IMG/VR virus record: IMGVR_UViG_3300017593_000998
Location: 1-12,529 of that record
Strand: one strand, 5' to 3'
DNA: 12,529 nt
Within the stretch, counting starts at the first letter, position 1. Every line of letters begins with the position of its first letter. Below are positions 1 through 10,564 of this stretch, piece after piece. The notes below the pieces were generated by a model. It made no database searches and was not told the origin of the DNA. It was given only the letters and a program-made list of their open reading frames with translations. The translations under genes were made by a program, and so were the position numbers.

Positions 1-1013
1 TCGCCACCGCACGACTCAACGCACTGGTCGTAGCTGTCCATCGCCGACTGGACGAAGTTGAGGTAGTACTTGAAGTTCTCGGAGCGCCTCGATTCCATCC
101 TATCAAAGGTCACGCACACGGTGGCCACTATGAGGGCCACGAGGATTAGTGCCACGATGTACCCCGGAATTGGCAGTCCGAGCCCGCCGACACGGCGCAC
201 CGGCATGTAAACTATGTATCCGTCGCTCGTCTCCTCGACGTACGGCCCGGTGACGGCCTTTCCAGAGTCCGTAGTGTAGGGCGTCGGGTCAAGCGCCAGC
301 CCGAAGCCCGCCAGCAGGTTCTGGATGTCGTCAATCTGGCCCTTTATCTTGCGCTCGTAGACGTACTCGGCCACCGAGCTGAAGCCCGGAATCTTGTAAA
401 CGATGCCCTCCGGCTTCTTGTAGTAGAACTTGAACACGTCCCTGTCGGCGGTGAGCGTGGTGAACGGCATATCGAGGAGCCTTGCCTCGTAGCCGACCCA
501 GTAGTAGCCGTCCGGGATGACTACCGTTTGCAGGTCCATGCACCCAAGTACCGGGTCGTAGCGCGTGCACACCTGCAACTGCCTGGTCTTTAGGTTGGAG
601 CTCGGGTAGCGGCCCCACATGACGCCCGACTTCCACTCCCTATACTGCGTTTCGAGCGGCCTGTCCTCCGGCTTGTTCAGCCCGGCGTAGAGCAGGTGGG
701 TCGCCGTCTTGTAGTCCACGAGCAGGACTGGAAACATGGTGGCGTACTGCCTGCCCTGCTCGTCCGTCTTGACGTAGTACTGGAGGAAGATACGGTGGAC
801 GTTCGGCGAGTAGCGCACCCTTATGTCGCCGATGACCTTCTCCTTGTACGTGCTGAGCACCTGCGACGGGATCTGGAAGGTCTCCGGGTCAAAGGGGACG
901 TACATCACAGTGCCCCAGCCCCCCACCTTGAAGAGGTTGAGCGCTGGCGCGTCAGTAGGTTCAAGGGGCGGGCTGACCGCTATCAGCTTACCCTCCTTAA
1001 CCAGCATGGTCAT
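1..1013 (-). CDS. Membrane protein, >337 aa, truncated by the window edge; contains a diverged copy of the W/Y-rich repeat domain and a TM helix (absent from the ORF track)
   Basis: ATG at 1013 after GGGGGAGGCGGTGA, 3 nt past the upstream stop. The frame is open to the window edge: MTMLVKEGKLIAVSPPLEP...LLYAGLNKPEDRPLETQYREWKSG...DGYYWVGYEARLL...GLPIPGYIVALILVALIVATVCVTF (TM)...DSYDQCVESCGG. Confidence 0.9.
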   Translation of the reverse strand, partial: MTMLVKEGKLIAVSPPLEPTDAPALNLFKVGGWGTVMYVPFDPETFQIPSQVLSTYKEKVIGDIRVRYSPNVHRIFLQYYVKTDEQGRQYATMFPVLLVDYKTATHLLYAGLNKPEDRPLETQYREWKSGVMWGRYPSSNLKTRQLQVCTRYDPVLGCMDLQTVVIPDGYYWVGYEARLLDMPFTTLTADRDVFKFYYKKPEGIVYKIPGFSSVAEYVYERKIKGQIDDIQNLLAGFGLALDPTPYTTDSGKAVTGPYVEETSDGYIVYMPVRRVGGLGLPIPGYIVALILVALIVATVCVTFDRMESRRSENFKYYLNFVQSAMDSYDQCVESCGG

Positions 1014-1016
1014 AAC

Positions 1017-1448
1017 TCACCGCCTCCCCCTAGTTCCAGCGTAGTCGAGCGCCAGCAGGATTAGGGCGTAAGCGCCGAGAAGCTTCAGCATCCCAATCAT
1101 GTTGCTCTTGCTGTCAACTGTCAGCTTTGCGGGGTACTGGACGAGGTACCACAAACCGTCGCTCTGGCAGTACTGCCTCTCCAGCTCAACGCCGTTCATC
1201 CAGTTCTGCACAATCTGGTCAACCGTATGGTCGGGTGGCTTGGAGGGGCTCTTGTAAATGACGCGCACCTTTGAAGGGTCGCCGTAGATTGTCAAATGAG
1301 CCCCCATCACGTCCGGGTTTACCTGCTTAACTATGTCGGTAACGTCAATTATTGGGCTGGTCTGGTTCGCCCATCTCACAAGGCGCGGGCTGTTCTTGTA
1401 GGTGTTCACCATCCCGCTTATGAGCGTCTCGACGCTACACTCCACCAT
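1017..1448 (-). CDS. 143-aa protein: one copy of the W/Y/C-rich repeat domain plus a C-terminal membrane anchor
   Basis: RBS GGAGGTGA 5 nt before ATG. Clearly homologous to the N-terminal domain of 2354..4390 (WANQxSP, DVT, LTIYGD, NWxxGVExERQYCQxDGxWY). Ends MIGMLKLLGAYALILLAL followed by RGRR. Confidence 0.9.
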   Translation of the reverse strand: MVECSVETLISGMVNTYKNSPRLVRWANQTSPIIDVTDIVKQVNPDVMGAHLTIYGDPSKVRVIYKSPSKPPDHTVDQIVQNWMNGVELERQYCQSDGLWYLVQYPAKLTVDSKSNMIGMLKLLGAYALILLALDYAGTRGRR

Positions 1449-1460
1449 GCTATCACCTCC

Positions 1461-1928
1461 TCAGCCGAACAGCAGTATGCCGCCGATAATCAGGGGCAGG
1501 AGCAGGTTGCCGCCCTCCTCCTCAGCGGGCGCCTGTGCCTCCCCCGTCGTCTCCGGTGTCTTTGTCGCCGTGCCCTGTATGGTGACGACGAAGCTGTCCC
1601 CGGCAATCTTCTCGCCGTCGGGCCCCCTGAACTCGACGACGAACCGCACCGGCCCGCTCACCGGCACGGCGTTACTGGGGCAAGTGATTGGGTAACCCGT
1701 CACCGTGTAGCCCTCGACGACGGTGCAGTAGGGCACCTGGACTGGAATCTCGACGTAGAGCGGCGGCTGGAGGTCGAGGACGGGGCTGGTCTGCCACTCA
1801 AGGCCGGCGCCCCTGACGACGAAGTACCCGCTGACCGGTGGCTGTGCGTAGTCGAGGACGACCTGGATGTTCATGACTTCGCCCGACCGATAGACAGACC
1901 TGTCGGGCCTCGCTGACATTACTACCAT
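1461..1928 (-). CDS. 155-aa protein: complete Ig-like domain, acidic linker and C-terminal TM anchor
   Basis: RBS GGAGGTGG. Ig-like opening PDRSVYRSGEVMNIQV. Last two strands GPVRFVVEFRG and EKIAGDSFVVTI. One Cys pair. Ends in hydrophobic LLLPLIIGGILLFG. Confidence 0.85.
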   Translation of the reverse strand: MVVMSARPDRSVYRSGEVMNIQVVLDYAQPPVSGYFVVRGAGLEWQTSPVLDLQPPLYVEIPVQVPYCTVVEGYTVTGYPITCPSNAVPVSGPVRFVVEFRGPDGEKIAGDSFVVTIQGTATKTPETTGEAQAPAEEEGGNLLLPLIIGGILLFG

Positions 1929-1944
1929 CTTTCACCACCTCCTT

Positions 1945-1999
1945 TGAAGGCTGGGGGCCCCCACCGTGGACGGCGGAGGGTCAGCCTCCGGCTCCTTCA
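1945..1999. other. GC-rich, highly self-complementary intergenic segment
   Basis: TGAAGG (1945-1950) and CCTTCA (1994-1999) enclose the palindrome TGGGGGCCCCCA (1952-1963), CCGTggACGG (1964-1973) and CGGAGG-gtcag-CCTCCG (1974-1990). Confidence 0.45.
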
Positions 2000-2332
2000 G
2001 ATTGGCACAGCGTAGTCCTCCGGAACGTACATACTGACGCTAACTGACCCGGTGTACGTTCCTGAAGTCGTCGGGGCCGTGAAGGTGAACGATTTGCTCC
2101 CTCTGCCTTTAGAGCCGACTGATATAGTGCCGCTCTGTGTCTTTCCGAATAGCTTGGCTATAATGGAGAAGTTTGCTGAAAACGGGTTGGGGTTGTCCAC
2201 TGTAACAGTTACCGTCACGGGCTCCCCCGGGGCAACTGCCGTTTTGTTTAGGGCTACGTCGAAGCTACCTTTTTGGGCCACCGGCTTCACGGTTACGCTC
2301 ATAGACCTGGTTCCCAGGCTAATCCACCCCAC
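1997..2332 (-). CDS. 111-aa protein: N-terminal putative donor strand plus a CARDB/Ig-like domain apparently lacking its last strand
   Basis: RBS GGGGGTGA upstream. Starts MGWISLGTRSMSVTV. Ig pattern LNKTAVAPGEPVTVTVTVDN...KSFTFTAPTTSGTYTGSVSVSMY, then only VPEDYAVPI*. Confidence 0.88.
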   Translation of the reverse strand: MGWISLGTRSMSVTVKPVAQKGSFDVALNKTAVAPGEPVTVTVTVDNPNPFSANFSIIAKLFGKTQSGTISVGSKGRGSKSFTFTAPTTSGTYTGSVSVSMYVPEDYAVPI

Positions 2333-2353: not shown

Positions 2354-4390
2354 TTAGTAATACGCGTAAAGCTCGACCTTAACCCCATGCTCACCCACCT
2401 TAACATCCGGGGGGACTGTTATTGGGGCCTCGATTATCGTCGGGCTTGTGGTTGCAGTGACCTCTTCTGACTCGTAGTGCCTGCCGAATGCGTCAATGCC
2501 GAGCTTGAACTTTAGACTACCCGGCGCCTCCCAGTTGACTTTTGCTATTATTTTCAGGGTGTCGCCGGCCGCTACTGTGGTCTTGTCAACGCTGGCCTCC
2601 CAGCCGATTGTTGGAGCTGTTACGTAAACCTGCTTTGACATTGCATAGAACCCACTATCAGAGTATCTAAGCAATATCAGCGTGAGCGTGTGGTAGCCAG
2701 TTGATAGTGGTGGTAGCTTTGCAACTTTCGTGAACCTTCTCTGCCCGGCCTTCCAAGCGTCGTAGTTGACCTCTACCTGGTCAACCAGCTTGCCGTCCAC
2801 GAATAGCTTCGCGCCCCAGGGCCTTTCGTAATGTGTCACGTACCCTCCAACGTCATAGTTGTAAGCCACAACTCTTACGTAACCCTCAACCCCAAACTCT
2901 ACTGTCCCATCGCTCCTTATATTTAGTATTGGAGTCGCCCTGGGTGCATTGTACTTAAATTCGGCCGGTATCTTGACCCAGTACCACTTTCCGCTCTTTG
3001 AAGAGTACATTCTTTCCATTTCGTAGCCTTCCAGCCAGCCCTTGACCACCTTAGTGCAGAAAGTATAACCATCGCTGTACCTGTCGGGCGGTTTGTCCCA
3101 GCCGTATTCAATGACTTCAATCTGGCTCGGCCTGTCTAGGTAGAGCTTCACCGTGCCGCCACTGGAGTAGTTGTCGTCTGCGTATCTTAGGCGGGTTCCG
3201 AATACAGTTATTTCGTCCAAGTATTCATAAGTTGGGTACTTTCTGTTCATCGTTGACTTCAGCTTGCTCTCGACGTTTATTGTCGGGGTCTTGCTCCCGT
3301 AGTAGGAGACGAGCGAGTTAACGAAGTCTTGGACAGAAGGCTCCTGGGTTCCCGGGATGACCCATGAGTACTGTGCACTCTCGTCCTCAACCCAGCCACC
3401 GCTGTAAAGCTCCACGAGGCCCTTGAGCGTGTACTTTCCGGGCAGGTTTGGCATCTTGAAGGTGAATGAGCCAGAAGTGCTCTTACCACTAGCAAGGTAG
3501 TACTCCTTCGAATACACCTGGACGACCTGAGAGTTCGGCTGTACCAGGAGAAACCTAAGCCTGAATTTGTAGCTCTTGTCCCAGCCGTTGGTGTGCGTCC
3601 AGTTTACAGTCACGGTCTCTCCAAGGCCGGGGTTGGACGGGCTAAGCTTGAAGGAGAACCTTTTCACCGTTACTGCCTCAGTCTCTATGTCGAGCTTGCA
3701 CGGGTAGAGAACCCAGTACCACTTTCCAGTCTTACTGCACTGTACCCTCTCCCACTCCTGGCCAGCCATCCAGTTCTCAACGATGTTCTTCAGCGCCTCA
3801 GTGCCGTACTTCTCAATGACGGCCGGCCTGCCGTCATAGTACTTATCTGGCTTGGTGTCGTACGGGCCGATTATCTTCTGGGGCTTGCTACGATAGACTG
3901 TAAGAGTGCCCCTTATGACCTTCGGCTGGACCACGTACTGGTCAACAATGCCAGTCACGTCAACAACCGCGTCCTGCTGAACAAAGTCATTCAGAACGCA
4001 GGGTAGGGTTAGGGTGCCCTGGACTTCGAGCTTGCACGGGTAGATGACCCAGTACCACTCGCCGTCCTCCTGGCAGTACTGGCGCTCGAACTCGACGCCT
4101 GCCAGCCAGTTGTGGAGGATGTTCCACCTCGCCCTGTCGCCGTACACGCCCACGTCGGCCGGCCTGCCGTCCGGGTACGTGGTGGGTTTTGTGGAGCCGG
4201 CCTTGACGATTTTTATCCTCGCAAGGTCGTCGCCGTAAATGGTAAGGGTGGCCTTGGTGACCTTTGGGCAGACCGCCCTGACCGTCTCGGTGACATCAAG
4301 GACTGGGGAGTACTGGTTAGCCCAGCTAATGGCAGTCTTGGAGTAGTTGTTCACCATTCCGTCCCTGAATATTTTAGCGTCGCACCCCAC
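2354..4390 (-). CDS. ~678-aa modular surface or spike protein: repeat-repeat-Ig-repeat-Ig-Ig (last Ig incomplete)
   Basis: Start moved to GTG at 4390: it follows RBS GAGAGGTGA, and MGCDAK parallels MVECSV of the 143-aa paralog. Three copies of the W-x-x-G-x-E-x-E-R...G-x-W-Y-W-V domain and three Ig-like segments. Ends GEHGVKVELYAYY*. No signal peptide or TM. Confidence 0.92.
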   Translation of the reverse strand: MGCDAKIFRDGMVNNYSKTAISWANQYSPVLDVTETVRAVCPKVTKATLTIYGDDLARIKIVKAGSTKPTTYPDGRPADVGVYGDRARWNILHNWLAGVEFERQYCQEDGEWYWVIYPCKLEVQGTLTLPCVLNDFVQQDAVVDVTGIVDQYVVQPKVIRGTLTVYRSKPQKIIGPYDTKPDKYYDGRPAVIEKYGTEALKNIVENWMAGQEWERVQCSKTGKWYWVLYPCKLDIETEAVTVKRFSFKLSPSNPGLGETVTVNWTHTNGWDKSYKFRLRFLLVQPNSQVVQVYSKEYYLASGKSTSGSFTFKMPNLPGKYTLKGLVELYSGGWVEDESAQYSWVIPGTQEPSVQDFVNSLVSYYGSKTPTINVESKLKSTMNRKYPTYEYLDEITVFGTRLRYADDNYSSGGTVKLYLDRPSQIEVIEYGWDKPPDRYSDGYTFCTKVVKGWLEGYEMERMYSSKSGKWYWVKIPAEFKYNAPRATPILNIRSDGTVEFGVEGYVRVVAYNYDVGGYVTHYERPWGAKLFVDGKLVDQVEVNYDAWKAGQRRFTKVAKLPPLSTGYHTLTLILLRYSDSGFYAMSKQVYVTAPTIGWEASVDKTTVAAGDTLKIIAKVNWEAPGSLKFKLGIDAFGRHYESEEVTATTSPTIIEAPITVPPDVKVGEHGVKVELYAYY
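3690..4059. repeat. 34-bp direct repeat (32/34 identical) at 3690-3723 and 4026-4059; a 17-bp part (3711-3727) recurs at 2976-2992
   Basis: tcgagcttgcacgggtaga(ga/tg)acccagtaccact, encoding the WYWV(L/I)YPCKL ends of the repeat domains. Confidence 0.85.
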
Positions 4391-4395
4391 TGCTA

Positions 4396-4557
4396 TCACC
4401 TCTCCCTAGACATTAGGGCTATCGCCAACCCAGCAGCACCAAGCACTAAGAGCAGGCCAGACCCCTTGTCACCAGTCGGCGAAGGCGTTGGGGAGGGGGT
4501 CGGTGTAACGACCTCCACCGAGAACGTCTTTGAACCAACTGGATACCAGCTAGCCAT
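4396..4557 (-). CDS. 53-aa micro-protein: putative donor strand, Pro/Thr linker and TM anchor (absent from the ORF track)
   Basis: RBS GGGGGTGG 4 nt before ATG. MASWYPVGSKTFSVEVVTPTPSPTPSPTGDKGSGLLLVLGAAGLAIALMSRER*. Its stop lies in the RBS of the next gene, so it fills the gap exactly. Confidence 0.88.
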   Translation of the reverse strand: MASWYPVGSKTFSVEVVTPTPSPTPSPTGDKGSGLLLVLGAAGLAIALMSRER

Positions 4558-4569
4558 TATACCACCCCC

Positions 4570-4677
4570 TCAGTAGTAGGCCTCCAGCCGGACTGAACCC
4601 TGGTAGGTTCCCGGGTTCTGCGGTGCGGTGAACGTGAATGTATGGTCCCAACCACGTGCCACGTCGCCATCCAGCAT
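4570..4677 (-). pseudogene. Frameshifted or internally deleted paralog of the 111-aa Ig-like subunit
   Basis: ATG at 4670 gives MATWHVVGT (donor-strand-like). A different frame (ATG 4677) gives MLDGDVARGWDHTFTFTAPQNPGTYQGSVRLEAYY*, whose end matches SFTFTAPTTSGTYTGSVSVSMY of 1997..2332. Confidence 0.65.
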
Positions 4678-4711
4678 CCCCCCTTTTTGTTGTACGTGTA
4701 ACTAAACTGGT

Positions 4712-5035
4712 TTAACCAAACATGTGGTTTAACGCCCAGATTAGCAGCCCGCTGGATATAGCAATTGAGATTATAACAGTGGCCCCTTTTACCTTGTCTC
4801 GAAAGGATTCCAGTTGCTCGACTTTAAGCTCCAGTTCTTTTATCCTCTGGTCGGTGTCTGCCTGGTACATTTCCACCATCTCCTTCAGTTCGTCATTGTT
4901 TTTTTCCAGCATGCTAATGATTTCATCGAGCCTGCTCTTAACCCATTCAAGGTCAGTAGATAGCTTGGCGATTGCCACCCCCATATCCATCATTTTTTGG
5001 CTGAGGCCGTTTCCGGAGTTCTCCCCGCTCCCCAC
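4712..5035 (-). CDS. 107-aa coiled-coil protein with C-terminal TM helix (architecture like XhlA/holin-type viral membrane proteins)
   Basis: RBS GGGGGCGG before GTG. Heptad-like LSTDLEWVKSRLDEI...IKELELKVEQLE, then hydrophobic ATVIISIAISSGLLIWAL. Confidence 0.8.
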   Translation of the reverse strand: MGSGENSGNGLSQKMMDMGVAIAKLSTDLEWVKSRLDEIISMLEKNNDELKEMVEMYQADTDQRIKELELKVEQLESFRDKVKGATVIISIAISSGLLIWALNHMFG

Positions 5036-5060
5036 GCTACCGCCCCCTTTACGCCGTTGG

Positions 5061-5348
5061 TCAGTCCCAGTCCTCCATCTCGGAGCGCTGGTCAGTGAGG
5101 CTCTGGTGCAGGACGTCGTGGAGCTGGGCCACGTCGAGCTTCAGCGCCTCCACGTCGTTGCGGAGCCTGGCGACCTCCTCGCTGAGCTGGCGGGCTTCCC
5201 TCTGCAAGTCCATGACCATGCTCTCAACCAGCTCGACCTTACCGTTGCTGACAGCTGAGCCGACCCTGCTGAACAGCCGGTACATGACCAGCGCCACGAG
5301 CGTCCCGCCGGCCAGCACCGAGACGAAGGCCCCCGTGTCAAACATCAC
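5061..5348 (-). CDS. ~95-aa protein with N-terminal TM helix and coiled coil
   Basis: AFVSVLAGGTLVALVMY, then heptads LQREARQLSEEVARLRNDVEALKLDVAQL. Overlaps the upstream stop. Start at GTG 5348 or ATG 5345. Confidence 0.8.
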   Translation of the reverse strand: MMFDTGAFVSVLAGGTLVALVMYRLFSRVGSAVSNGKVELVESMVMDLQREARQLSEEVARLRNDVEALKLDVAQLHDVLHQSLTDQRSEMEDWD

Positions 5349-5712
5349 TGCGCACCGCCCCCAGTGTTATCTTTTTCCTCAGCCAGCCGTCGGAGAGCGT
5401 TATGGTCACTCTGTGGCCGGCGAACTCCTGTGCCGCCAGCCACACCGTCGCCTCGTCGCACACTTCCAGCTCCACCGAGCCGTGCGCCTCCTGCTGACCG
5501 TCGCCCTCTATCAGGATGATGAAGTCGGTGCCAGGCACGTCAATCCCGACGTTCACGCACTTGAAGTACGGCCTTATCCAGACCCCGAATATCAAGCCGC
5601 CGCTCTTCGTCATCCTGACCTCGTTGCCCTCGACGCCTAGCAGTTTGTACTCTGCTGGCCCACGCCCGGAAAGGAAGTAAAGGAGCCGGCGGAGGAGTTC
5701 ACCGAACCTCAT
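5338..5712 (-). CDS. 124-aa hypothetical protein, beta-rich with an amphipathic N-terminus
   Basis: Fills the gap in the operon; starts 6 nt after the upstream stop. No family recognised. Confidence 0.7.
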   Translation of the reverse strand: MRFGELLRRLLYFLSGRGPAEYKLLGVEGNEVRMTKSGGLIFGVWIRPYFKCVNVGIDVPGTDFIILIEGDGQQEAHGSVELEVCDEATVWLAAQEFAGHRVTITLSDGWLRKKITLGAVRSDV

Positions 5713-5718
5713 AGCGCA

Positions 5719-6189
5719 TCACGGGAACGTTACTGTGACGTAGATGTCAAGCAGGATTGAGCTGTCCTTCGTTATGGCCGGGTCGATGGTCACGTGGTTG
5801 AACAGGGTTCCGGTAGTGTAGTCGTTGCCGTCCGTGTGCTCGTAGATGCCGGCCTCGGTGTAGGTGTAGCCGTTCGCGTCCTCCGGCAGGTAGCGGACGT
5901 AGTACTGGACTGTGTTGTTGCTCACGGTCACCTGTCCTGTCTTGGCAGAGCTGGGAACGGCGGTGAACAGGCCGGTGTCGTTTTCGCTCGGCGTCCCCGA
6001 GCCGGTTCCGAGGACGAGGAACCAGTTCGAGGAGCCCTGGCCCTGGCCCCACGCCTGGGCAAACATCTGCTTGGCGGCGGTCGTCAGGACGTTCTTCCTC
6101 TCCACAACGTTTACAACTTCGCCGGTCTCGGCGTCCCTGGCCACGAACTTCCAGGTCGCAACCGCCCCGACGGTTTCCCCAACCTTCAT
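5719..6189 (-). CDS. 156-aa virion protein, phage tail-collar/fibre-base-like (DUF3751-like), paralog A
   Basis: RBS GGGGGTGA. Motif chain NVLTTAAK...LVLGTGSGTP..NDTGL...EDANG...TEAGIY...GTLF...ITKD...LDIYVTV, typical of this widespread phage structural family (recognised by eye). Confidence 0.75.
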   Translation of the reverse strand: MKVGETVGAVATWKFVARDAETGEVVNVVERKNVLTTAAKQMFAQAWGQGQGSSNWFLVLGTGSGTPSENDTGLFTAVPSSAKTGQVTVSNNTVQYYVRYLPEDANGYTYTEAGIYEHTDGNDYTTGTLFNHVTIDPAITKDSSILLDIYVTVTFP

Positions 6190-6202
6190 AACATCACCCC
6201 CC

Positions 6203-6886
6203 TTATGGCAGTATTTTTATTGTGACATAAACGTCGAGTATGATGTCGGGCGTCTTCTCAATGCTCTGAGGGAGTAGGGCGTGTTCGAAGAGCACACCCG
6301 CCGTGTAGCGGTCGGGCGGGATGTAGTACTCGGCGTAGCTGTAGTCGCCGACCTGGTACCACTTCGGCGGTATGTTCTCGTAGATGCCGACCTCAGTGAA
6401 CGTGTAGCCGTTCAGCTCCTCGGGCATGTAGCGGACGTGGTACTGGAAGCCCCTGACCCCGCCCGTGCCGTCGAGGTACGTCAGGTCGGCGTCCGAGCCG
6501 TAGGGGAACGGCGTTATGTTCACGTGCCAGCCGCTCTGGTCGTGGGTGATGCTTATGGCCGCCCCGTCCTGGCCCTCCCCACGGGCGCTCTCGGGTACGG
6601 CCTGGAACAGGTCAGTGTCGCTCACGTCAGGCGTCCCGCTCCCGGTGCCGAGGACGAGCGCCCAGTACGGGCGGACATAGTAGCCGATGTCGTTTGGGCA
6701 GATAGGGTTTGAGGCCGGGTTGAGCCGTTTGGCCACGTACTTTCCCGTGAGCCAGGCCTGCCGGAGCAGGTCAGCGCCGGCGTTTGTTATGACGTTCTCG
6801 GTCGTTACCTCCTGCACCTTGCCCGTGCGGACGTTCGTCGCCACGACCCGGACGACGCCCTTAACTCCAAGCTCATCTACCCTCAT
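6203..6886 (-). CDS. 227-aa virion protein, tail-collar/fibre-base-like, paralog B with three insertions
   Basis: Start moved to ATG 6886 (RBS GGGGGTGG, directly after the upstream stop at 6888). Shares LVLGTGSGTP, AVPxSA, YxVRYxPExxNGYTxTExGIYE and ILLD/IILD with paralog A. Confidence 0.78.
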   Translation of the reverse strand: MRVDELGVKGVVRVVATNVRTGKVQEVTTENVITNAGADLLRQAWLTGKYVAKRLNPASNPICPNDIGYYVRPYWALVLGTGSGTPDVSDTDLFQAVPESARGEGQDGAAISITHDQSGWHVNITPFPYGSDADLTYLDGTGGVRGFQYHVRYMPEELNGYTFTEVGIYENIPPKWYQVGDYSYAEYYIPPDRYTAGVLFEHALLPQSIEKTPDIILDVYVTIKILP

Positions 6887-6887
6887 A

Positions 6888-8096
6888 TCAACCACCCCCG
6901 GCGTAGCGTTCAAACTTATTCAAGGTATAGTTTGTCGCCTCAGGCAGGCTCATGACGGATGGGTCGCTCTCGTCGGTCGTGTTGTTTGGGTTCAGCTCCA
7001 CGAAGAACCTCGTCTCGCTGTCAATGCCTATCCAGATGACCGCTTGTGGTGTTGAAGTGTCCCAAGTCTCGATGTAGTACGGCAGGCTGTAGCGTGCTGA
7101 GGCATACGCAATTCTAATGTCCGAGCCGTCAGCGTTTGCTTTTATGAAGTCAAAGTTCGAGCCGTCGAGGTCAATTGCAACTTGGAAGTGCTCTAGGTCA
7201 TAGTTGTTCGGGTTGGTGATTGTTATCTTACGGCGGTAGAGCCATCCGGAGATGTCGCTTGATTCTTCTTCGCCTACAACAATAGTTGGCTCTTGCTCGG
7301 CATACTTGCGGACACGAACCCAATCAATAAGCGTCTCCATACTTGCATCGTATGCACTTTTCTGAAATATCATCACGTAACCAGAGAAAGCATTTGTCTG
7401 CGTAATACTCGCTGTATTACCATCCCAATATCCTATATGTATATTCCCATCTGTCTTTATTCCTACTTGATGCCATTCGTTGCCCGTAATTGTCGCCAAC
7501 TCGCTTGATACCACTGAATTTCCGTCGTTAGAGACTATCCTTGTCGGATAACCCGAGCGGTATTTTAATTCCAGTCTTACGAGTGGTGCTTGCTCTGATG
7601 TCTGCGATGACGATAGTTCTAAGTGTACAGTATATGAACTCTTTAGCATAACCCTTGCCTCAACTACAAGAGGTTGTGTGAATGTGCGTTGTGTCGCCAA
7701 ATAGATTTTATTTGCAGCCCCTATACTTGTCTTAATGTCAAGTATGCTGTCTGATACTGTAATCGATGTCGAACCTTCTTCTACTAGTGTCCACTTTGTT
7801 GTGTCAACCGATGAACCCTCAAAATCATCATATAAGTCAAACACCTGCTCTGGGTCGCTCTCGCTCACCGCTGAGGGGTTTCCGTAGTAAACATACAAAT
7901 CAACGCTACTGTTAGCAGGGATTTTTGGCACTTTGACCCATACTTTTCCCTGCCCGTTTTGAGCGTCCCATTTTTCTATCCAGTACGGGAGTTTCCACGG
8001 CAAGCTCCACACCCTAACCGCTTCCCTCTTATTCTGAGCGTCGTCAAAAAACCTTTGAGCCGTAACCGTCAACTGCACCCTTTGAGTCGCCATCAC
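6888..8096 (-). CDS. ~401-aa DUF2341-containing protein with a central concanavalin/LamG-like beta-sandwich; candidate receptor-binding protein
   Basis: DUF2341-type motifs LPYWIEKWD...VWVKVPKIP...LYVYYGNPSA..SD...VF..YDDF, DWVRVRKY...EP, and WLYRRKITI...FQV.IDLD...FDF.KA..DGSDIR. Confidence 0.85.
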   Translation of the reverse strand: MMATQRVQLTVTAQRFFDDAQNKREAVRVWSLPWKLPYWIEKWDAQNGQGKVWVKVPKIPANSSVDLYVYYGNPSAVSESDPEQVFDLYDDFEGSSVDTTKWTLVEEGSTSITVSDSILDIKTSIGAANKIYLATQRTFTQPLVVEARVMLKSSYTVHLELSSSQTSEQAPLVRLELKYRSGYPTRIVSNDGNSVVSSELATITGNEWHQVGIKTDGNIHIGYWDGNTASITQTNAFSGYVMIFQKSAYDASMETLIDWVRVRKYAEQEPTIVVGEEESSDISGWLYRRKITITNPNNYDLEHFQVAIDLDGSNFDFIKANADGSDIRIAYASARYSLPYYIETWDTSTPQAVIWIGIDSETRFFVELNPNNTTDESDPSVMSLPEATNYTLNKFERYAGGG

Positions 8097-8104
8097 TCAC
8101 CACC

Positions 8105-9079
8105 TCACGTCACGCTATATTCGGCATACCACTCGCTTATGTCAAACGCACCCGTTCCGGCAGTCGTGGAGTAGTACTCCAGGGTGTCTAAGCTGTCTTG
8201 GGTTTCTTGAGGCGTTAGGGTCTGCACGGATACCACGTTTAGCGTTAGTTCGTCATAGGTGCTCTGCTGTTCGCTTATGCTGGAGGACATCATCACCTGA
8301 TATTCGGCGTACCACTCGCTTATGTCAAACGGCGTGCTGGCGGGCCCCGTTGATGTCAGCACCCTATCATGTGCATACACCGACTCGGCAAAGGCCCTGA
8401 TGACCAGCGCCTCATCGTCCTGCGGGACGTAGCCGGCCGGTATGTCGTCAGACCACTGGCGCTCGTCGAACCTCAGCACCTCGGCGGAGGCCGTGCTGGT
8501 GCCGAACGCCTCGCTTGTCTGTGCGGTCTCATCGAAGGTCAGCGTGACGGCCTGCGCCTGGTAGGTTGATATGCTGTCCTCGGGCACTACTGGCTCGTCA
8601 AAAGAGGGCGTGAGTATCTGGCCCGACCACACCTCGAAAGAAACCGAGTCGTCAATCGTCTCATCGAACGCCTGCACCACCACGTCGGCGGTCGAAACGG
8701 ATATTGAGGTGCCCGACTGCTGGGCTTCATCAAAGTATCTGCGCACGGCGTCGGCGGTCGTGTAGCTCAGGCCGTCGGTGCTGGTCTGCTCCTCTTCCAG
8801 CGCCCGAATTACCAGCGGTCTTGTCACGGCACCCACGTCTTCTTGTAGGACTTCAATTAACTCCTTAGCAATGTCGTCGTACGTGGCCACCACCACGGCG
8901 TCCCCGGCGCTCGCCATCTCACGGACGGTGTAGATGTATCGGTCTCTGATGACCACGAGCGTTATGTCGCCGCTGTGGTGCACTTCGGCCTCAACTGCCT
9001 TGCTGAGCAGGTCAATTAACCTCCTCGGCCCGAGCCTCGTACTGCCAACCTTCAGCACCGACGGCCAGCGCCCATTCAT
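8105..9079 (-). CDS. 324-aa acidic protein with about nine to ten ~22-aa repeats; candidate spike/fibre shaft or scaffold
   Basis: FDE recurs five times at exact 22-aa spacing, with further degenerate units. FDISEWYAEY occurs twice near the C-terminus. Confidence 0.85.
   Translation of the reverse strand: MNGRWPSVLKVGSTRLGPRRLIDLLSKAVEAEVHHSGDITLVVIRDRYIYTVREMASAGDAVVVATYDDIAKELIEVLQEDVGAVTRPLVIRALEEEQTSTDGLSYTTADAVRRYFDEAQQSGTSISVSTADVVVQAFDETIDDSVSFEVWSGQILTPSFDEPVVPEDSISTYQAQAVTLTFDETAQTSEAFGTSTASAEVLRFDERQWSDDIPAGYVPQDDEALVIRAFAESVYAHDRVLTSTGPASTPFDISEWYAEYQVMMSSSISEQQSTYDELTLNVVSVQTLTPQETQDSLDTLEYYSTTAGTGAFDISEWYAEYSVT
8117..8331. repeat. 32-bp direct repeat (31/32 identical) at 8117-8148 and 8300-8331
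   Basis: atattcggc(a/g)taccactcgcttatgtcaaacg, 183 bp apart and in frame, encoding FDISEWYAEY. Confidence 0.9.
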
Positions 9080-9426: not shown

Positions 9427-9987
9427 TCACGGCAGGAACCCCTCGTACTCCCTTATTATCCTCGGCGCCGGGGCCGGCAGTCCGGGCGTGGGCGGCTGTG
9501 CTGGCACCTGTACCTGCAACTGCGGCATCAGCGCCCTGAGCGACCCTATGAACAAATCCATGTTGGTGACCCTGATGAGCAGGACCTCGTAGTTCAGCGT
9601 GGCGTCGCTTGAGCCGCCGATAAGCTCAATCCTCATCCTGCCCTTGATGGCCAGCGGCGGGTTCGGCGAGAGCTCCACGGCGTACTCGTTCGTGCCCGGC
9701 GAATAGACCGCAACGAAGGGCATGGTCGAGGTGAAGGTGTAGCCCTTGCCCTCCAGCTCACTCGCTATCAGCCGGAACTCCGTGGTGCTACCGAAGGCCG
9801 GGTCGTACTCAATCCTCAGCCCTGCGTCCGGCACGTTGGAGGTCACCCTTGCCCCGATGAACCACCCTGCCTCCTCGTCGGGTGAGGAGTAAACCTCCTT
9901 CTTCTTGCCCGCCTCGACCGGCTCGGTGTCCACGTACCGTATTTCCGTCCAGCCCTCAAGGAGCGGGAGCATACTCAGCAGGTCCAT
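9427..9987 (-). CDS. 186-aa beta-rich protein with a Pro-rich tail; candidate penton or minor capsid protein
   Basis: Start moved to ATG 9987 (MDLLSMLP; RBS GGAGGAGTGA, 4 nt after the upstream stop). Alternating strands GWFIGARVTS, GLRIEYD, YAVELSPNPPL, GRMRIELI, NYEVLLIRV. The fold is inferred. Confidence 0.7.
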   Translation of the reverse strand: MDLLSMLPLLEGWTEIRYVDTEPVEAGKKKEVYSSPDEEAGWFIGARVTSNVPDAGLRIEYDPAFGSTTEFRLIASELEGKGYTFTSTMPFVAVYSPGTNEYAVELSPNPPLAIKGRMRIELIGGSSDATLNYEVLLIRVTNMDLFIGSLRALMPQLQVQVPAQPPTPGLPAPAPRIIREYEGFLP

Positions 9988-9991
9988 GTTA

Positions 9992-10564
9992 TCACTCCTC
10001 CCACCATTCAATTCTGACGCAGTACTTCGCAGTCTTGTCGGACGTGTTCTCAACCTCTATGTATATGCCGTGGCCCTCCAGTATCTGCCCTGCCATGCCT
10101 CTGGTCGCCGGCGCCCCTGTGGCCCACTTGCCGGAACCGCCGGGCAGTAGGGTCTCGGTGTACTCCGTGGTGTAACCACTGTACGTTCCGCCGTGCTCGA
10201 ACACCACTACCGACGTGGCGTTGCCGCCAACGAGCTTTCCAAGCACAGGTATCGCCGTGCCGCTGGAGTCAATCGTCGGGTCGTGGTGTATCCTGACAAC
10301 GCCCTCTGCCCCGCCGAACACCAGCAGGGCCTTGACGTAGAGCGACTTGCCGCTCCCCTGCGGGTTGATGAAGACGAAGCCGTGGGTGTCGCCGGAGTCA
10401 ATGTCCACTACCTTGGCCGCCGCAAAGCCCTTGTCAGCCATGACGATTGAGCTCCACACGTCGTCGGTCTTAGCCGTGTCGGCCACGACTATCTTGTCGT
10501 TGATTTCTGCAACGTTGGGGTCAGAGCGGAAGGCGCCCGTTTTCATCACCTCCGGGCGCCTCAC
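9992..10564 (-). CDS. ~184-190-aa beta-sandwich virion protein (NPxGSG...WWEE pattern, reminiscent of DUF6143)
   Basis: FINPQGSGKSLYVK and C-terminal VRIEWWEE. Start uncertain (GTG 10564 overlapping the upstream stop, or ATG 10546). The family resemblance is from memory and unverified. Confidence 0.7.
   Translation of the reverse strand: MRRPEVMKTGAFRSDPNVAEINDKIVVADTAKTDDVWSSIVMADKGFAAAKVVDIDSGDTHGFVFINPQGSGKSLYVKALLVFGGAEGVVRIHHDPTIDSSGTAIPVLGKLVGGNATSVVVFEHGGTYSGYTTEYTETLLPGGSGKWATGAPATRGMAGQILEGHGIYIEVENTSDKTAKYCVRIEWWEE
10531..10561 (-). promoter_or_regulatory. 9-bp GC-rich hairpin enclosing the RBS and ATG of the ~190-aa gene
   Basis: Minus strand AGGCGCCCG-GAGGTGATGAAAA-CGGGCGCCT, beginning at the last base of the upstream stop codon. 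Confidence 0.5.

Follow-up and report, generated by a model that had tools for sequence, protein, structure and literature searches.

A conserved 53-codon viral micro-ORF as a candidate strand-donating membrane tether for apparently incomplete Ig-like domains

What could a viral protein of 53 amino acids (aa) do if it is made of a possible beta-strand, a Pro/Thr-rich stalk and a membrane anchor? The question is raised by a micro-open reading frame (micro-ORF) at 4396..4557 on the minus strand of a 12,529-nucleotide (nt) sequence, the entire IMG/VR contig UViG_3300017593_000998, which we refer to as the window. From sequence comparison and structure models, we propose with a probability of about 0.5 that the micro-protein is a small, C-terminally anchored membrane protein that donates a strand in trans to the open terminal immunoglobulin-like (Ig-like) domains of proteins encoded next to it.

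The gene runs from ATG 4557 to TGA 4396, and its product divides into a proposed N-terminal docking strand, or N-terminal extension (Nte; residues 1-17), a Pro/Thr/Ser stalk (residues 18-33), an apolar segment of ~17-19 residues (about residues 34-49; Kyte-Doolittle mean of 2.27 over 17 residues) and a basic tail, SRER (residues 50-53). The net charge is 0 in the N-terminal part and +1 in the tail. The start lies 12 nt past the upstream stop, and this spacer (GGGGGTGGTATA, 4558..4569, minus strand; identical in a near-identical strain, L013) holds the Shine-Dalgarno (SD) sequence of the micro-ORF and preserves the reading frame between it and a 35-aa ORF upstream. Measured against the contig's own SD consensus (GGGGGTGAT / GAGGTGGTGA, 3-6 nt ahead of the start), gagggggtggtata-ATG ahead of the micro-ORF fits as well as the sites of accepted genes. 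On the downstream side, the large gene that follows most likely starts at GTG 4390 and not at 4399, because the encoded M-G-C-D-A aligns with MPCDA of relatives and the database copy (P0001) has 678 aa. With this start, the TGA of the micro-ORF and the large gene are 5 nt apart, and the tail codons AGG GAG AGG TGA serve also as the SD of the large gene.

The initial annotation, made from the letters of this DNA, had described an unannotated ORF here with a strand, a stalk, an anchor and a basic tail, a good ribosome-binding site and exact packing between its neighbours. We found the ORF and its layout at 4396..4557 and an SD as good as those of the neighbouring genes; the spacing is indeed tight (12 nt and 5 nt), but the GTGA overlap at 4399 is probably not the true junction. 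The description as unannotated also stands: the exact 53-aa protein is absent from the protein collection, though relatives are called as genes there, and it has no match in Pfam and no NCBIfam family above cut-off (LPXTG_anchor reached a sub-threshold 14.3 bits against a cut-off of 15.9). Gene callers passed over the 53-codon ORF despite its conserved family. The region of the micro-ORF contains no Rfam family and no tRNA, and a nucleotide search of it against GenBank phages gave no match.

ORF length alone is uninformative because the window contains 92 ORFs of at least 40 aa, and significance comes from conservation. The convincing genes are all on the minus strand and tightly tiled, with ~11.1 of 11.4 kilobases (kb) coding and most gaps of 3-25 nt; at 58% G+C, the sequence has many chance ORFs, an antisense one at 4112..4576 (plus strand) among them. 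We examined the contigs of 15 metagenome relatives of the large protein. The near-identical strain, with 98-99% DNA identity outside one swapped segment, keeps the micro-ORF with one replacement. Where the large protein is 44% identical (L016, L019 and L021), a 45-aa ORF stands between a 112-aa Ig gene and the large gene, in the same synteny as in the window; where it is 43% identical (L006 and L022-24), a 58-60-aa ORF is found behind a 102-aa Ig gene that is itself behind the large gene. A search with a profile of the micro-protein family across 5.8 billion clusters returned six small proteins of 45-60 aa (E values from 1e-13 to 1e-27), and an exhaustive HMMER scan of 1.84 billion representatives yielded two further clades, P0037 (59 aa, E value 2.8e-6) and P0038 (57 aa, E value 3.6e-4), each located 3 nt past a gene whose product ends in an Ig-like domain. 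On contig L026, the micro-ORF begins 3 nt after a terminal domain of the large-protein type.

The micro-proteins fall into five clades: the window and L013 (53 aa), L016/L019/L021 (45 aa), L006/L022-24/P0016-20 (54-60 aa), P0037 (59 aa) and P0038 (57 aa). Identity between clades is ~30%, and all keep the four-part layout. Every copy has its own SD and start codon and is located 3-47 nt past a gene that ends right after an Ig-like F strand. W4, G8, T11, V14 and V16 are invariant across the five clades; the stalk is always Pro-rich and cannot be aligned, and each clade has an apolar run of 14-21 residues (17-residue Kyte-Doolittle means of 1.9-2.6) followed by a basic tail of net charge +1 to +2. 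By hydropathy, all five have the layout of a single-pass, C-terminally anchored membrane protein, with one apolar segment near the C-terminus and no signal peptide. In the 54-60-aa clade, indels and replacements have occurred in the stalk, and the changes in the anchor are synonymous only. Conserved ends around a drifting stalk are what one would expect of a translated gene constrained at both ends, and with high confidence the family is a real protein-coding gene. A syntenic micro-ORF in related viral contigs, conserving a W-x-x-x-G-S-K-T-F core, had been put forward as a check on the initial annotation; relatives were found in five clades directly after Ig-ending genes, and the core recurs in them as W-x-x-[VIL]-G-x-[KQ]-[TSQ]-h-x-[VI]-x-V.

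The N-terminal motif also behaves as a module. Written as W-x-x-[VIL]-G-x-[KQR]-x-h-x-V-x-V, it is confined to protein N-termini in the loci examined: a regular-expression search in six frames of all loci (244,000 residues) found 20 distinct sites, all of them 0-3 residues from a coding-strand start codon. The motif is followed by an Ig-like domain in proteins of 102-112 aa, by a domain that we call WANxYSP and an Ig-like domain in proteins of 217-220 aa, by a WANxYSP domain, a Pro-rich linker and a hydrophobic tail in proteins of 164-178 aa, and by the stalk and transmembrane segment in the micro-proteins of 45-60 aa. The Ig protein and the micro-protein of L019 are identical over their first ten residues. 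The N-terminal motif of the micro-protein also heads the 111-aa Ig protein of the window as well as further module proteins, and it never occurs internally.

To which domains could such a strand be donated? We modelled the candidate partners as single chains using AlphaFold2 with family alignments; the predicted local distance difference test (pLDDT) score was 90.7 for the 111-aa model and 89.3 for that of the large protein. The large, multi-domain protein (678/681 aa, below the 681-aa protein; 2354..4390, minus strand) has three WANxYSP domains, an internal seven-strand Ig-like domain and a C-terminal six-strand Ig-like domain ending in ...VELYAYY-stop. In the model, the internal domain (residues 245-345) has seven strands, A-G, with an F-G hairpin of ...LVELY-SGG-WVEDESAQYSWVI, in which residues 333-345 form the G strand and W comes first after the Gly turn. 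The C-terminal domain (residues 594-678) is predicted to have six strands, and the chain stops one residue past strand F (...VKVELYAYY). The 681-aa protein has no N-terminal motif, and we propose it as an orphan acceptor or tip. The 111-aa protein (1997..2332, minus strand) consists of the N-terminal motif (MGWISLGTRSMSVTV) and an Ig-like domain for which six strands and no G strand are predicted, and we propose it as an adaptor that is both donor and acceptor. The 102-aa proteins, the 220-aa protein and the proteins encoded next to P0037 and P0038 also end just past a G-x-Y-x-G-x-V-x-V strand. The models therefore bear out the earlier view that the Ig domains are incomplete, in that the terminal domains of the 681-aa and 111-aa proteins come out six-stranded against seven strands in the internal paralogue.

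The partner domains match Pfam families weakly (BatD, E value 9.7e-5; CARDB, E values 0.0035-0.04), all under the gathering score. Foldseek aligned the 111-aa model with the CARDB domain of PF1109 at a TM-score of ~0.6; in the PDB, it returned only generic Ig-like domains (CARDB, glycosidase) for this model, with E values above 1e-3, and the large-protein model likewise gave only generic Ig-like chains. PDB sequence searches with the large-protein profile and a 324-aa protein of the window, a set of queries that did not include the 111-aa protein, gave no match.

The proposed donors and acceptors are balanced across loci. Each locus with a visible set encodes one acceptor-only protein, one donor and acceptor protein, and one donor-only protein with a hydrophobic C-terminal end. 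In this order, these are 681, 111 and 53 aa in the window; 556, 102 and 60/58 aa in L006/L022; 682/670, 111 and 175/178 aa in L007/L008; ~670, 217-220 and 164-172 aa in L002/L005/L009/L014; and a large protein cut by the contig end, 112 aa and 45 aa in L019. A donor-only protein contains no open domain that its strand could complete, and the strand, if active, must therefore act in trans. The chain terminator imagined in the initial annotation is in keeping with this arrangement, as exactly one donor-only protein with a hydrophobic C-terminal end is present per locus where the set is visible.

We propose that residues ~1-17 of the micro-protein would form a beta-strand that inserts in trans at the open edge of the terminal (CARDB-type) Ig-like domain of a partner, supplying the missing seventh strand to a protein that ends after strand F. 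The Pro/Thr stalk would keep this docking strand at a distance from the membrane, with the complex held on lipid by the apolar segment and the basic tail. The partners in the window would be the 111-aa adaptor and, via the adaptor or directly, the 681-aa fibre or adhesin protein, giving a non-covalent chain of tip (681 aa), adaptor (111 aa) and membrane-proximal anchor (53 aa). Alternatively, the 53-aa protein may bind the large protein directly, as the layout of L026 suggests. We infer that the apolar segment spans a membrane, which would be either a virion envelope made inside the cell, as in a lipothrixvirus-like particle, or the host membrane. The charge distribution favours an N-out/C-in topology, and the lack of signal peptides in the partners favours a cytoplasm-facing N-terminus on a tail-anchored protein. 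The neighbourhood, with a betalipothrixvirus-linked 156-aa gene and four other small transmembrane proteins in the module, suggests a membrane-containing particle. More tentatively, the locus as a whole may encode a virus attachment apparatus that is put together by trans strand complementation of separately encoded pieces and closed by a strand-stalk-anchor peptide of 45-60 residues.

Several observations weigh against the strand-donating tether. In the 111-aa model, residues 1-17 (~85 pLDDT) have no strand assigned and pair neither in cis nor in trans, and a position-specific score built from the N-terminal motifs placed the cis G strand of the internal Ig domain at rank 2-4 with a z score of ~3, which is not significant. 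Sequence inspection found no apolar N-terminal signal segment in any module protein. The upstream gene, presumably the original partner of the micro-protein, is cut to 35 codons in the window. Six locus types (L002, L005, L008, L009, L012 and L014) have no micro-ORF: in the first five, 52-66 nt separate a small coiled-coil or transmembrane gene from the large gene behind it, and in L014 a small transmembrane gene overlaps the called start of the large gene. In all, about half of the related loci lack a micro-ORF; in its place they encode a protein of 164-178 aa that combines the N-terminal motif with a hydrophobic tail. Neither the 12.5-kb window nor 20.7 kb of sequence from a related contig gave a capsid, portal or terminase match, and scans of genome collections (185,579 genomes) found nothing and indicated no host. 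The membrane tether for Ig-terminated proteins suggested by the initial annotation therefore gains from the conservation, the N-terminal motif and the strand G missing in the models, but the monomer model of the 111-aa protein shows no strand pairing. Its further idea that the ratio of micro-protein to 111-aa protein sets fibre length found no support and is pure speculation; nothing indicates that the 111-aa protein polymerises.

The 35-aa ORF just upstream (4570..4677, minus strand) is the 3' remnant of an Ig gene of the 102/111-aa type, covering strands E-F and ending in EAYY-stop; the initial annotation had overlooked this truncated gene and its shared frame with the micro-ORF. A tblastn search with the 111-aa protein (aa 66-102) matched window positions 4689..4576 with 47% identity (E value 4e-5), and the 35-aa ORF matched the 111/102-aa genes with E values of 1e-5 to 9e-7. 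The ORF adjoins the preceding coiled-coil/transmembrane gene, and a G-run abuts its ATG with zero spacing, a poor SD. Compared with L013, the remnant has 3 nonsynonymous and 0 synonymous changes and the micro-ORF has 1 nonsynonymous and 2 synonymous changes, both tiny numbers. We consider the 35-aa ORF probably a relic, and the window's lineage has truncated the Ig gene that stands intact ahead of the micro-ORF in L019. The N-terminus of the window micro-protein is most similar to that of the L022-type 102-aa protein, and the EAYY end of the remnant is also of that type. One TGA and then four codons separate the remnant from the micro-ORF, in frame; an in-frame layout with the upstream gene is also found in three other clades and is not found in the 54-60-aa clade.

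This truncation raises the question of whether the window ORF is itself a non-functional leftover of the rearrangement that shortened the upstream Ig gene. Its upstream partner is a 35-codon remnant, several relatives have no micro-ORF, and the sole near-identical second copy (L013) is 98-99% identical in DNA and so little informative. Nevertheless, the ORF, the SD and the motif are intact, the few differences from L013 are 2 synonymous and 1 nonsynonymous in the micro-ORF against 0 and 3 in the remnant (tiny numbers), and the family is clearly functional elsewhere; we give this explanation little credence. A similarly small chance falls to the idea that the micro-ORF is mainly a C-terminal extension of the upstream Ig protein, reached by occasional stop read-through as in some RNA virus coats, or the product of gene splitting; read-through would yield a minor form of the Ig protein that carries its seventh strand, a stalk and an anchor in cis. 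The upstream gene and the micro-ORF share a reading frame in four of the five clades, where a single stop and 1-4 codons intervene (gaps of 12, 9, 3 and 3 nt; four or more of five would arise by chance with a probability of ~0.045), and a 155-aa protein of the window has the extended layout in one chain. However, the frames differ in the 54-60-aa clade, whose gaps measure 43-47 nt; each copy carries an SD and a start of its own; read-through in the window would add only to a 35-aa fragment; and among other donor genes that follow acceptor genes, only about half are in frame. TGA is, moreover, the ordinary stop of 16 of the 19 genes here, on which ground we also rejected TGA recoding. An origin by gene splitting is in any case compatible with a strand-donating tether.

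The remaining alternatives accept the protein and give it another role. The N-terminal motif may be a general docking or targeting peptide for a common receptor site or assembly factor, in the manner of capsid-targeting or cargo-loading peptides, with the micro-protein as its membrane-anchored bearer. That the motif is common to four unrelated architectures, is not paired as a strand in the AlphaFold model of the 111-aa protein and has no significant similarity to the cis G strand would all agree with such a peptide, which we regard as unlikely; it leaves unexplained that every terminal Ig-like domain ends with strand F, and that donor genes regularly come after acceptor genes in balanced numbers. 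Rather improbable, in our estimate, is a small membrane protein unrelated to fibre docking, acting in lysis or egress, superinfection exclusion or the envelope, whose N-terminus came from the duplicated 5' end of an Ig gene. Small membrane proteins are known beside receptor-binding genes in phages, and the micro-ORF adjoins other small transmembrane or coiled-coil genes, including one for a 95-aa protein laid out like pyramid-forming egress proteins. Against this, the N-terminal motif is kept across clades of ~30% identity and the stalk drifts freely, which argues that the strand itself is under selection.

If the micro-protein is a strand-donating tether, how does it compare with known systems? 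Fibres built by donor-strand complementation include chaperone-usher pili with a terminator subunit, type V pili with a lipid-anchored anchor pilin, and the threads and bundling pili of archaea. Like these, the module has Ig-like subunits without a last strand, a tip protein without an extension, and a chain-ending last subunit fixed to the envelope; it also has a short N-terminal extension with alternating apolar residues that belongs to the next subunit, with strand exchange being a prediction here. Unlike in these fibres, the genes are viral, the module proteins have no signal peptide or fold match to pilins by Foldseek, and the proposed terminator has no Ig domain, only a strand, a stalk and a transmembrane segment. 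We know of no earlier description of a terminator reduced to a donor strand and an anchor, and our literature search found no donor-strand fibre system in a virus or phage. No chaperone, usher or other assembly machinery (chaperone/usher, Tat, sortase) was among the Pfam, PHROGs and NCBIfam hits. Archaeal systems of this kind have been reported (10.1101/2022.04.26.489512 on threads; PMC12337348). The partner domains resemble CARDB/BatD (DUF11-like) Ig-like domains, matching the profiles below the gathering score; the match spans profile positions 9-83 of 101, with the last strand unmatched.

The C-terminal half of the micro-protein invites two other comparisons. Like PGF-CTERM/archaeosortase and LPXTG/sortase signals, it has a Thr/Pro-rich stalk, an apolar helix and a basic tail at the extreme C-terminus. 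Unlike them, it has no motif conserved ahead of the helix across clades and no N-terminal signal peptide. We rejected a sorting signal: no PGF-CTERM or archaeosortase family of NCBIfam matched, and the LPXTG_anchor match was sub-threshold and in the window copy only. In PRD1-type viruses, a small membrane protein ties the vertex complex to the viral membrane, and Pf3-type coat proteins are small, N-out and inserted without a signal peptide. The micro-protein resembles these in size, in its single transmembrane segment and basic C-terminal tail, and in the proposed link between a complex and a membrane; it differs in having no sequence relation to them.

Two further proteins of the module have C-terminal apolar segments. 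The 155-aa protein (1461..1928, minus strand) has a beta-rich domain and one more strand, then an acidic/Thr stalk and, at the C-terminus, an apolar segment, and looks like an in-cis version of the Ig, strand, stalk and anchor arrangement; its match to the micro-protein is weak and non-significant (E value 1.3). The 143-aa protein (1017..1448, minus strand) has one WANxYSP domain and ends in a transmembrane segment with the tail RGRR. Its counterparts in relatives are the proteins of 164-178 aa (e.g., L007 2458..2985 and L002 7697..8191), whose N-terminal motif it has lost, as it begins exactly at the ‘EC’ that comes after the motif in those relatives, and it has a full transmembrane segment where they have a short hydrophobic tail. 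The window micro-protein may have taken over the donor role from this homologue. The WANxYSP domain itself spans ~110 residues (W-A-N-x-Y-S-P ... T-I-Y-G-D ... E-W-E-R-Q-x-C ... Y-W-V-x-Y-P-C, including conserved cysteines). The large protein has three copies of it and the 143-, 164-178- and 217-220-aa proteins have one each, and it has no match in Pfam or the PDB. Within the gene of the 681-aa protein, ~600 nt at 2635..3231 (minus strand) are only ~65% identical to L013 and the DNA elsewhere is 98-99% identical; this stretch marks a module exchanged in the central part of the large protein, which would be expected if that protein recognises the host.

The micro-ORF appears to belong to uncultivated archaeal-type viruses. 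Paralogous proteins of 156 aa (5719..6189, minus strand) and 236 aa (6203..6913, minus strand) have weak tail-collar and tail-fibre hits in Pfam and PHROGs. Homologues of the 156-aa protein were found solely in the betalipothrixviruses AFV3/6/7/8/9 (ORF164-type; ORF164 of AFV6), with 31-33% identity and an E value of 1e-12. The large protein and two other proteins had no lipothrixvirus match; the only tie to cultured viruses is the 156-aa protein, a single-gene link. Viral contigs scanned with the large protein and with the Ig family yielded no hit beyond the contig of the window itself. Betalipothrixviruses are enveloped and have terminal attachment structures, and at least one of them acquires its envelope inside the cell (PMC10791045); intracellular envelopment would reconcile the signal-less partners with a membrane anchor. 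A related 26.6-kb contig (L027) encodes an HTH_24 protein and, at 3968..8278, a 1436-aa protein with a primase-type PHROG match. We rejected a tailed virus, as the tail-fibre hits are weak, the 1436-aa protein resembles a primase rather than a tape measure, and capsid, portal and terminase matches are absent from the sequence covered.

Other genes of the window complete the picture of the neighbourhood. The 95-aa protein (5061..5348, minus strand) has an N-terminal transmembrane segment followed by helical/coiled-coil sequence, the layout described for pyramid-forming egress proteins of archaeal viruses (PMC10791045). An ORF of at least 338 aa (1..1016, minus strand) runs off the low end of the window, has a transmembrane segment near its end and is homologous to a 414-aa protein encoded after the micro-ORF in L006 and L025 (shared YVPFDP..). 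The 324-aa protein (8105..9079, minus strand) is made of repeated acidic Ser/Thr-rich units, each closing with ..DISEWYAEY.., and is 34% identical to a 344-aa protein of L027, with no family; it was considered as a capsid protein and set aside because of its repetitive make-up. The ORFs at 9427..10053 and 9992..10564 (minus strand) overlap by 62 nt as listed, and the downstream start, TTG 10053, is probably called too early.

How terminal fibres are fixed to the lipid envelope of enveloped archaeal viruses is unknown, and the origin of the envelope is still open (PMC10791045). If a strand-donating micro-protein operates here, it would be the first donor-strand system in a virus, one assembled with neither secretion signals nor a chaperone/usher apparatus, and would have the smallest terminator or anchor subunit known. 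Such a subunit could fasten terminal fibres to the envelope that a lipothrixvirus-like particle acquires inside the cell. The micro-protein would provide a concrete link between fibre and envelope and would extend the strand complementation of bacterial and archaeal pili to viruses in a minimal form.
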